A stretch of 63,047 nt of DNA, counting the filler, from Olpidium bornovanus S191 (taxonomy: Eukaryota > Fungi > Olpidiomycota), in assembly GCA_017911155.1 (NCBI GenBank). It is 28 parts of 28 records of this genome, joined end to end, with 100 filler letters (N's around TTAATTAATTAA, not from the genome) between each part and the next. Parts side by side here need not be neighbours in the genome. Positions count along the whole stretch, not along the records: positions 38,504 to 40,330 come from JAEFCI010007319.1; 27 more parts are not named here. One strand, written 5' to 3'. Below are positions 36,941 through 40,330 of the stretch, piece by piece. The first letter of the stretch is position 1. Every line of letters starts with the position of its first letter. The notes below the pieces were generated by a model. It was not told the DNA's origin. It did no database searches and was given only the letters and a program-made list of their open reading frames with translations. The translations under genes and the position numbers were made by a program.

Positions 36941-39042
36941 TGGTTCTTATGCCTCCTGCGGGATTAAGAGATGGAGATTTAGACGACTTGTCTCATGCGT
37001 GGGGAAGCTGCCCTCTCTGGAGGAGCCTAGGGGTGTGCACCTCTCTGAATGCTACTCAGGCATCAGCTGAGTGCTTGATGTGTCGCCTTGCGCAGCTCAG
37101 GCTCTGGAATTTTTCCTGATGCGCTCCGTTTTTACCATTGCCGCGCATGGAGCCAAACTCTCCTCTCTAACACGCGAAGGTTTGAGCACCAAAAGGAAGA
37201 TTCTTTGTGAAGGACGGAGCCATGGACGCCGGCCTTTGAGCAAGGAGGAGTGTTGGGAACTACGTATGATGCACTGTGCGGGTCACGGGATCCTCAATGT
37301 GCTACTCCTTTGGGGGAGGAGCGTCCCCGACAGAACAGCAAACAAAGGAAGAAGAGAGCAAAAAACTGCAGCAATCAAAAAATCGGGCGGCCAGATTTCG
37401 TTCGACGGGAAACGGATTATTGCCGTAGCGGTATCCAAAAAATACATTAGGCTTTGAGCTCCATTCCCCACAGCTGCCAGGGGGGAAAAAATGGCCCCCT
37501 TCACTGGGAACGAGCGCGACCGCCGCACTACAAACCGCTTCTCGCCGGCTTCGCTTTGCGCGCTGGGGGGGGTGGGGTGGATGGGCGGGAACGCGGCTAT
37601 CTGCAAGCCTTTCATAGTTCAGATTTCCAAAGCGTCGGGTTACGTATGCTGTAAGACTCGCTCGACGGTCACGCTATCGAATCTGGCGTTGGTTTTGGAG
37701 GGCGGAGCGCACAGAATTCTTGGAAAAAAAATTTTCTGCAAGGTGTTTAGTGGCTATCTGCAGGCTTTTTCTTTTGTATAAAGGACGCACTCTACGGTCA
37801 CGCCATCGAATCTTGCGCTGGTTTTTGGCGGGCGCGGCGCACATAGCTCTGCCCTCATCGCAGACGCGAAAACCCAAATGAAGACCGCTTGTCCCGGCTC
37901 CCCATAGTCGTTTGGAAGCTTTTCGGCCCTCCCGCGCGTAACATAAGAACCTACAGGGGTACGGCAGCGGTTGGTGCTCGTGGTGCGTTCAGGCCAAACG
38001 TTCCAGGAGGAGCGCGCTCGAGAACGGCGAATCCGCGCGGAACACGGGGCGAACCAAAGGCAGTGAGCAAAATTGAAAAAACTAGCGGCGTTGCCGCAGG
38101 GGAGGCTGGGTCGCCGAGTCGGACGCGAACAGGAATCCGCCCTCCCGCCCAACCCCCACAAACGACGGCTTTTACGTCGCCGGCGACAAAAAGAACAAGG
38201 CGCCGCCCTATTCCGGGCCAAAACAAGGACGCTCGGTCGTCCCGCGGCAGATGCAAGAAGAAATATAGCCCTAAAACAGAGACGGAGAATTGTATATGTA
38301 TAGCGGCGGCGGAGACAGCCTCGACGAGCGAAGGCCAAGCCTCCGCCGGGAATTTCCGCACCAAAAATTGTGTTCGCGAAATCTCTTGATGGCGATTCCG
38401 CACNNNNNNNNNNNNNNNNNNNNNNNNNNNNNNNNNNNNNNNNNNNNTTAATTAATTAANNNNNNNNNNNNNNNNNNNNNNNNNNNNNNNNNNNNNNNNN
38501 NNNAAGCACTTCCACTTTCTTCCATACCTTTTAGAGCAACAACGGTCAGACCCAGCACAATGCCACCTTCCGTAACTGCTTAAACAACAAAAAAAGAGAT
38601 CGGCGGCACCGAAAAAAAAAGGGAGAGGAAGGGAGGGGACGGGGGGCGGCGGGGTGGGGGGGACGGGGGGGTTCGGGTTGAAGGGGGGGTTCGGATTGAA
38701 GGGGGGGGGTTCTGGTTGAAGGGGGCCGGGGGGGGGAGAAGGGAGGTTAAGGTTGAAGGTGGAGGACAAGGGGGGGGGAGCAGCTCGGAAATTTTGGGAA
38801 GGAAGGCCAAAATAAAATTCCCCGAGGGGGGATATTCGACGGAAAAAGGCACCCCAGGAAAAGTTTACCGGAAATGGAACCCCCTTGAAAATAGACCAAT
38901 AAAATCCATAATAAAATGTCAGCGGGGCTTCCTACCTTTTTTAAGCTTAACCTAAACCTAATACTCGATGAGTATTTGGCGCCCACCTGGCTTTTTTTCA
39001 CGGTTTATACCAGGGTAACCCTGGCATAAATATAAGAAACCT

Positions 39043-39761
39043 TTGCCGGACACACCAACCACTACACTTCACGAGTACCTCACGAAGCCAGCTCTTCGAG
39101 CTGAGTCGGAAGGACTAACCAGGCGCGCCAATTGCACTGCGCAACATGGCCTTGTTCGCGAGTTTTTGTCCTACGTCGAAGCTCACGATTTGTGCCTGAG
39201 CGATGAGCTCTCGGCCTTCCACAAGGTTTTCCCTGCGGCACCGCCGCTGATGTGGACGGTGCACAATGATCAGGTGAGATAGGTCTTGATTGCGCGTCTC
39301 TTTGTGCGGTTTAGCGACGCTTTGATCGCGGGGGCTAACGAAAGCCATGCTGTTAGCCCCGCATGCACGTCGATGGCGACGCCAATCACCTGTGCCTGGC
39401 TTTCTGCATGGAGGAGCCGGGCATTTCTGGAGGCAAATTTGTCTTGCCGGCCCGCGGCGTGTTCTTCAAGCTGGAGGACAACCTCCTGTTCTTCTTTGCA
39501 AATGAGGAACCGCATGGGACGGCCGTTATGGACCTCCCGGAGGGGCATGAGGGCCGCCTGACGATGGCTCATTCGATTCCGCGGCGTCTTTGGTCGTTCG
39601 TGACGACCAGAGGTTTTGGACCTGCGCCGGGTCTTCGGTGCTCTGAGCCTGGAGGCGATGAAGACGTTCTCAGGCACTCTGAGCCCTTGGCCGATGACGA
39701 GGGCAAAGCCTCGGGTGTCGTGGAATTAGCTGAGCACTTGGCGACGACGACGCTTGTTTGA
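39043..39761 (+). CDS. TET/JBP-like 2OG-Fe(II) dioxygenase, 5' end unresolved
   Basis: Exon to 39273, an 83-nt intron at 39274-39356 (GTGAGA...GCTAAC...TTAG), then exon 39357-39761. Spliced protein: WTVHNDQPRMHVDGD...CLAFC...GGKFVLPARGVFFKL...LLFF...HGT...GRLTM, giving the HxD...H...RxT set. Confidence 0.7.
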
Positions 39762-40330
39762 GGTGAGGGGCGAATCGGGATTACGGTCAAGGTATTTGGC
39801 GACGGCGTCTCGGGCATTGACGGGGTTTTCCTCGTCTTCCCAGGTGGCTTCGGCCCTGTCGTAGCCAAGCCAAAGGACGAGGTATTGTTTTTTTCCGCGC
39901 CGAACACGCTTCCCAATTACCGCTTCTACCTTGTACTCGTCGTTCTCGGAGCGTGGCCGGCTGACCTTCCTTCCTTTGCCCGGTTCCTTGTACTTCTGCA
40001 GGAGCGAGACGTGGAAGACAGGATGGATCTGGGCGAAGGGTGGAGGAAGTGCCAGCGTATAGTTGTCCTTTTTGTCTTTGTCGGTGACAAGAAAAGGGCT
40101 AACATAGGGCGCTGCGTATTTTCGGGATAGCGGTTTTTCCTCGTGCCGGAGGCCTTCTCGGAGGAGAAGTGGATGTCTTTTCGCCGTGAGTTGCACGCCT
40201 TGGCTTGTCGGGCTTGAGCTCTCTTCAAGGCGTCCTGCGCCTTTTGGAGCTTGGCAGATAAATTGGCCAGGGGACTGTCCTTCCGGATGCCGTCAAGGCC
40301 ACGAAAGTCAGTCCCGAAGGCCAACATGTG
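39726..40330 (-). mobile_element. Ty3/Gypsy chromovirus remnant: integrase C-terminus and chromodomain
   Basis: AQDALKRAQARQAK, a frameshift, then YVSPFLV...YTLALP...IHPVFHVSLLQKY and EYKVEAVIGKRVRRGKKQYLVLWLGYDRAEATWEDEEN. Confidence 0.92.

Follow-up and report, generated by a model that had tools for sequence, protein, structure and literature searches.

We analysed a window of 63,047 nucleotides (the whole stretch of DNA under study, made up of joined parts of the Olpidium bornovanus S191 assembly) and focused on a piece of 1,827 bp at 38504-40330 (JAEFCI010007319.1), both strands of which were read. This piece holds a predicted two-exon gene with a TET-like catalytic half on the plus strand and the 3' end of a retrotransposon pol gene on the minus strand. 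The features are as follows, with positions counted along the window.

38504-39066, no strand assigned: upstream stretch in which nothing resembles the 5' regions of the paralogues
39067-39273, plus strand: exon 1, conserved part (LHEYL...HNDQ), with ungapped matches to the paralogues P0020 and P0006
39274-39356, plus strand: predicted spliceosomal intron of 83 nt, phase 0, based on the sequence, junction enumeration and relatives
39357-39761, plus strand: exon 2, comprising the putative TET-like catalytic half, an acidic tail and the ..TTL end (stop codon 39759-39761)
39726-40330, minus strand: terminal 3' portion of a Ty3/gypsy chromovirus pol that runs off the contig (stop codon 39726-39728)
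39726-39761, both strands: 36-nt tail-to-tail overlap of the frames of the TET-like gene and pol, from ORF coordinates

A search of the piece at 38504-40330 for tRNA and Rfam families identified none. The upstream stretch contains a G-rich tandem array at 38619-38725 (period 18-20, unit about GGGGGGGTTCGGGTTGAAGG, ~3 copies), which sits within a longer G-rich tract (38600-38800) and is quadruplex-prone in appearance. A perfect 15-nt palindrome, CCAGGGTAACCCTGG, occurs at 39010-39024, just 5' of the point where homology to the paralogues starts, and a TATA-like AT-rich box, GCATAAATATAAG, follows directly at 39024-39036.

The locus is represented in GenBank by KAG5459137.1 (P0004; BJ554DRAFT_499, 'MAG: hypothetical protein', Olpidium bornovanus), which was recovered at 99% identity to exon 2 in the exhaustive protein search described below. 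This public gene model, which maps to 39363-40127, is a mis-annotation. It begins at M3 of exon 2, without exon 1, and, past a predicted intron of 48 nt, goes on along the strand antisense to the chromodomain ORF. The resulting C-terminal extension was rejected, being the antisense of that ORF, and the ..TTL end that it replaces is kept in distant relatives. The public model of P0006 likewise enters the antisense of pol; in addition, it runs on into the intron and leaves out the HxD region.

The earlier note on this DNA had proposed that two disconnected ORF pieces are joined by a canonical 83-nt intron. The first plus-strand ORF (39043-39282) opens with TTG and ends in ...WTVHNDQ, followed by VR and a stop, and the second (39363-39761) lies in another frame. 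Removal of 39274-39356 fuses the two exons in phase 0 (...HNDQ/PRMHVDGD...), and the removed interval carries a GTGAGA donor, a GCTAAC branch site with the branch A 18 nt before the acceptor, and a TTAG acceptor. Fifteen GT..AG pairs restore the frame, and in the junction enumeration all the residues conserved in relatives were kept by 39274-39356 only. Two distant relatives, P0012 (..NYQPKTHQD..) and P0014 (..LQPRIHVD..), run across the position of the exon junction without interruption. The same donor also occurs in the paralogues, as P0020 ends in ..NYQVR-stop and P0006 continues as ..NYQVSG.. into intron-like sequence. Exon 1 aligned without gaps to residues 200-270 of P0020 (80% identity) and to residues 68-136 of P0006 (62% identity), and the first ten intron-frame residues diverged more between the paralogues than exon 1 did. 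The proposal was thus borne out by the sequence itself, by the junctions of P0012 and P0014 and by the donor shared with P0006 and P0020. The 83-nt intron and the spliced reading are confirmed, as far as sequence comparison goes, as real and as more than chance.

To place the predicted protein, relatives were sought among 1.84 billion protein representatives. An initial word search gave two relatives and the exhaustive search gave 14, one of which was spurious, leaving 13 credible relatives. The rejected sequence, P0017, is bacterial chemoreceptor-like and its match was confined to the acidic tail. The relatives consisted of three Olpidium models and short ORFs from ENA, JGI and Logan contigs, and those of exon 2 shared 31-77% identity with it and kept the H, D, H and R. 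Exon 1 alone had no relatives among proteins of 42-135 aa, and related-locus scans of metagenome contigs and viral contigs found nothing. There are at least three further paralogous copies (P0005, P0006 and P0020). In P0005, H-I-S replaces H-x-D and the exon-1 region is absent, and none of the copies seen so far is demonstrably intact. Beyond the catalytic core, an acidic stretch and the C-terminal end ..V-E-L-S/A..T-T-L-stop (39620-39761) were kept even at ~40% identity. Their conservation suggests that the acidic stretch and ..TTL end may form a functional tail motif.

The neighbouring minus-strand ORF (39726-40196) matched SH3_Tf2-1 (E 6.7e-11, 42.6 bits, cut-off 30) and Chromo (E 1.2e-13, 51.1 bits, cut-off 25.1). 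By these domain matches, the minus-strand pol end is the integrase C-terminal SH3-like domain plus chromodomain of a Ty3/gypsy chromovirus. The earlier note had mentioned that fungal TET/JBP expansions are often linked to KDZ transposons; by the Pfam results, the mobile-element partner here is a chromovirus on the opposite strand and not a KDZ DNA transposon. Three-frame translation revealed that the pol frame shifts once near 40150-40200, where the integrase C-terminal region gives way to the SH3-like/chromodomain part. Unless this frameshift is a sequencing error, the retroelement copy is damaged too, alongside the truncation of the TET-like gene described below.

The stop codons of the TET-like gene and pol face each other, so that the gene is antisense to pol. 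This tail-to-tail layout and its spacing are common to P0006 at 62% protein identity: residues 147-344 of P0006 aligned in one frame to 39438-40025, a match that continues past the C-terminus of the TET-like protein along the strand antisense to pol. The linkage of gene and pol is based on these two contigs, and no pol was found after the gene in P0005. Within the 1.8 kb of the piece (1.2 kb past the pol stop), no LTR, direct repeat pair, polypurine tract or element boundary was defined. There was also no purine-rich tract directly after the pol stop, which fits the presence of extra internal sequence before the LTR. On this evidence, we propose only tentatively that the TET-like gene is carried inside the chromovirus element.

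Elsewhere on the minus strand, a purine-rich run, AAAAAAGGTAGGAAG, was observed at 38928-38942, with TGACATT.. a few bases on. That this run could be the polypurine tract and LTR start of a minus-strand element is purely speculative.

The alternative that survives best is that gene and chromovirus are linked by history, through an old insertion next to the gene (or one guided by the chromodomain into the same repeat-rich chromatin) and subsequent segmental duplication. The gene would then lie outside the chromovirus and could be a host gene or the cargo of some other transposon that was not seen. The preservation of the tail-to-tail spacing, with its 36-nt overlap, at 62% protein identity speaks against such a history, as does the single collinear homology block that spans both genes. 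The antisense orientation and the kept intron also fit carriage by a retroelement, and no transposase is visible in the piece. On the other hand, the layout was seen on two contigs only and P0005 is without it, no LTRs were seen in the 1.8 kb, and the mobile elements known to carry TET/JBP genes in fungi are DNA transposons, with no retrotransposon among them (PMC12730594). Taken together, we consider linkage by history possible, though unlikely.

The 5' end of the gene was compared with those of the paralogues. A search with the exon-1 region of P0006 identified P0020 as a 270-residue uninterrupted ORF on five Logan contigs. Residues 139-269 of P0020 shared 66% identity with residues 1-137 of P0006, with a Met at the same place, and both proteins have ~61-67 residues, including a start codon, upstream of the motif L-H-E/S-Y-L. 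The homology of the present copy to both starts abruptly at 39067, and tblastn of P0020 and P0006 against the piece gave nothing credible upstream of this position. The exon-1 frame has a stop at 39016-39018 and its sole in-frame ATG at 39250. With nothing 5' of 39067 to match the N-termini of the paralogues, and with 39250 as the position of the first in-frame ATG, this copy appears to be 5'-truncated or interrupted rather than intact, provided that the break did not arise in assembly, as it could have in a short-read metagenome bin. The earlier note had described a spliced gene; in this copy that gene is not whole, as the N-terminal residues and start codon present in the paralogues are missing here. 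By comparison with P0020, a full-length family member would comprise ~270 residues.

Two ways of extending the gene upstream were considered and rejected. One was an intron at 39015-39036 that would take out the stop at 39016; at 22 nt, it falls short of spliceosomal size. An upstream exon in the G-rich region had as its candidate a match of P0006 to 38591-38701, which is of low complexity and which P0020 is without. Separately, residues 5-54 of P0020 and residues 6-55 of P0005 shared 52% identity, a region that lies upstream of the putative start Met.

The same comparison bears on whether this is an intact, free-standing host gene whose N-terminus lies in a further upstream exon, the retrotransposon being a mere neighbour. 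The contig is 1.8 kb long and such an exon could lie off its end, and exon 2 of this copy retains every catalytic residue. Residues 29-66 of P0006 also weakly matched the upstream stretch (38591-38701, E 0.048). However, this match falls in low-complexity G-rich sequence and has no counterpart in P0020. In that paralogue, a single ORF runs from the N-terminal part into LHEYL, so that an intron would not be expected between them. The stop at 39016-39018, the lack of an ATG and the recurrence of the gene-pol layout in the diverged paralogue P0006 also argue against a host gene, which we regard as improbable.

We further investigated the kinship of the catalytic half, using as reference CMD1, the TET homologue of Chlamydomonas reinhardtii (PDB 7cy4-7cy8). 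The iron ligands of CMD1 are H345, D347 and H397, its base-stacking residue is Phe416, and the distal Arg by which TET/JBP enzymes hold 2-oxoglutarate at its C5 carboxylate is R410 in CMD1, equivalent to R1896 in TET2 and R289 in NgTET1 (PMC7854593). In exon 2 (residues numbered from the P at 39357), we identified H4-V-D6 (39366-39374), G25-G26-K-F-V-L-P, H53-G-T (39513-15), R67-L-T (R67, 39555-57) and H72-S73 (S73, 39573-75). The HxD...H and distal R reported previously for the spliced product are therefore present as H4-V-D6, H53 and R67, and all catalytic residues are intact in exon 2 of this copy. Among the family members covering each column, H4 was kept in 12/13, D6 in 11/12, H53 in 13/15 and R67 in 12/15.

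TET enzymes carry an aromatic residue six positions after this Arg (R+6) that stacks on the flipped base (Y1902 in TET2, F295 in NgTET1 and F416 in CMD1), and the double-stranded beta-helix also has an N-terminal Arg (R1261 in TET2 and R244 in CMD1). At R+6, exon 2 has S73, which aligned to CMD1 Phe416. Ser occupied this position in 13/15 members, the usual aromatic being absent, in agreement with the previous observation of Ser at the stacking position with His one residue earlier. This preceding residue, H72 here, varied between H, S, C and T across the family. A15 aligned to CMD1 Trp358, and the family residues at this position were Ala, Gly, Val, Ser or Asn.

Exon 2 scored weakly against two TET-like Pfam families, PF12851 Tet_JBP (E 0.11, 12.1 bits, gathering cut-off 34.9) and PF20515 Tet-like 2OG-FeII_Oxy_6 (E 0.27, 11.6 bits, cut-off 27). 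When family members were scanned singly, 8/15 matched PF20515 (best E 6e-5) and 3/15 matched PF12851 (best E 9e-4), with best scores of 23.6 vs 27 and 18.9 vs 34.9, respectively. All matches were confined to the GG...HGT segment. As every Pfam score was below its curated cut-off, these matches denote remote homology and not family membership. The member-by-member scans returned no oxygenase family except PF20515 and PF12851, no rival family appeared in PHROGs or NCBIfam, and there was no AlkB signal in the Pfam scan of the locus. The earlier note had also raised the prospect of a better match to a metabolic 2OG oxygenase family, and none was found in the Pfam or PDB searches.

The sole PDB match of the family profile was CMD1 (7cy4), over ~85 residues, with an E value of 1.7e-4 for alignment A1 and 4.8e-5 for the cleaner alignment A3. 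The structures of TET2, NgTet1, CcTet and JBP in the PDB were not matched by this profile. In both profile alignments, H53 corresponded to CMD1 H397 and R67 to CMD1 R410. The HxD corresponded to H345/D347 in A1, and A3 starts two residues out of register there. Exon 1 on its own had no match in Pfam or the PDB, and the longer N-termini of P0006 and P0020 had no Pfam family and no meaningful PDB match. Two AlphaFold models of exon 2 alone reached a pLDDT of 43.5 and, for the core, 59.5 (seven strands and one helix), and a Foldseek search against the PDB returned no match below E 0.16, the top matches being generic cupins. These weak models are compatible with a double-stranded beta-helix and are not diagnostic of one.

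Collectively, the comparisons support remote homology to TET/JBP-type oxygenases. The original designation as TET/JBP-like stands in so far as the sole family signals (Pfam and CMD1) are TET-like, and needs to be weakened to remote homology in view of the sub-threshold Pfam scores. A different explanation is that the protein is no TET/JBP relative, and that some other cupin/2OG-type beta-sandwich or a non-enzymatic protein acquired the HxD...H...R set by convergence. The Pfam matches, all sub-threshold and limited to the GG...HGT segment, leave room for this, as do the generic cupins found by Foldseek (E >= 0.16) and the unmatched N-terminal half. Convergence would nonetheless have to account for two family profiles whose sole PDB match is a TET homologue, for a distal His and Arg that line up with CMD1 in each of the two alignments and an HxD that does so in one, and for independent members that match only two TET-like Pfam families, with no rival family in Pfam, NCBIfam or PHROGs. 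We therefore judge it to be quite unlikely that the resemblance to TET arose in this way.

The source given earlier, a zoosporic fungus, agrees with the record, which names Olpidium bornovanus. The genome was recovered by metagenomic binning, the sample being non-axenic zoospores washed from the roots of cucumber plants, and its working assembly comprises 13,695 short contigs and 29 Mb (PMC7865070), so that the fungal assignment of the locus is likely but not certain. An origin outside Olpidium, either from another eukaryote in the zoospore wash or from a chimeric short-read assembly, would suit such a fragmented, metagenome-binned genome and the relatives on ENA, JGI and Logan contigs, but has little probability given that P0005 and P0006 are in the same filtered bin (the third paralogue, P0020, being a Logan ORF), that binning required fungal similarity (PMC7865070) and that a second contig shows the same junction of gene and pol.

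We conclude with moderate confidence that the locus is a decayed, 5'-truncated copy, probably a dead one, of a gene from a small and very divergent TET-like branch, and that this gene moves with an LTR retrotransposon, antisense to it and probably inside it. In the mechanism we propose, the TET-like gene would be an antisense passenger (accessory ORF) of a chromovirus lineage, located in the interval from pol to the 3' LTR. A passenger gene of a retroelement keeps its intron only if it is antisense to the genomic RNA, and the antisense orientation found here makes intron retention compatible with carriage by a retroelement. In intact copies, Fe(II) would be held by H4, D6 and H53 and 2-oxoglutarate by R67, and the enzyme would oxidise a modified base in nucleic acid. 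By analogy with what has been proposed for the TET genes of fungal DNA transposons, such oxidation would plausibly erase a silencing mark on the element. As the active site is without the base-stacking aromatic, the substrate may differ from 5mC and could be, for example, 6mA, the dominant mark in early-diverging fungi. The most far-reaching form of this proposal, in which the pol and 3' LTR of a Ty3/gypsy chromovirus lineage in a zoosporic fungus flank an antisense gene with an intron for a TET/JBP-like dioxygenase, is one that we regard as doubtful at this stage.

Among fungi, Basidiomycota and Pezizomycetes are the groups from which TET/JBP genes have been reported. The present family, of which 1.84 billion proteins yielded 13 credible representatives, would constitute a very rare, previously unnamed TET-like branch. 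The locus also hints at a retrotransposon carrying a TET/JBP-like enzyme, which has not yet been reported and, if true, would be the first retrotransposon known to encode such a dioxygenase.

The closest system with a known structure is CMD1. Its GGxFVLP...HGT core aligned with that of exon 2 and the spacing is similar, with 49 residues from H to H here and 52 in CMD1, and 14 residues from H to R here and 13 in CMD1. In contrast, overall identity was low and the N-terminal halves did not align. The stacking residue Phe416 of CMD1 is replaced by Ser, and CMD1 Arg418 aligned with Pro here, with an Arg one or two positions further on. Trp358 blocks the 2-oxoglutarate site of CMD1, which for this reason uses vitamin C (PMC7854593), whereas the residue aligned to Trp358 is Ala here and small in most members. 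For the family, 2-oxoglutarate rather than ascorbate can reasonably be inferred as the cosubstrate.

The transposon-borne TET/JBP genes of fungi resemble the present family in being multi-copy, TET-like and tied to mobile elements. These include the PU, AG and PE types and CcTet of Coprinopsis (Kojima 2025, PMC12730594), some being so divergent that sensitive methods find only CMD1, NgTET or CcTET, and their proposed role is to counter methylation-based silencing (PMC12730594). The fungal carriers in the 2025 survey were DNA transposons and Helitrons only, and according to that survey no retrotransposon encodes a TET/JBP enzyme (PMC12730594). Here, however, the partner is a Ty3/gypsy chromovirus, the organism is a zoosporic fungus and the Pfam matches, including that to PF20515, are below threshold. 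If the tie to the chromovirus is real, both transposon classes have taken up a base-oxidising counter-defence.

Additional antisense ORFs between pol and the 3' LTR have been described in the plant Ty3/gypsy elements Grande, RIRE2 and Retand (PMC7264820). The gene found here likewise lies downstream of pol on the opposite strand. The plant ORFs have no recognisable homology, whereas the present gene has an enzyme-like catalytic set and an intron, its placement inside an element being the part that we infer. Should that tie be real, it would provide the first enzymatic example for the antisense extra ORFs of LTR elements. Finally, Gypsy elements of Phalaenopsis contain an ORF for an AlkB-type 2OG dioxygenase, an m6A RNA demethylase (PMC9289625). 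Unlike the present family, in which there was no AlkB signal, that enzyme belongs to the AlkB family; it acts on RNA and is found in giant elements of a plant. The two have in common a 2OG/Fe(II) dioxygenase acquired by an LTR retrotransposon, as proposed here, and presumed to remove a silencing mark of the host.
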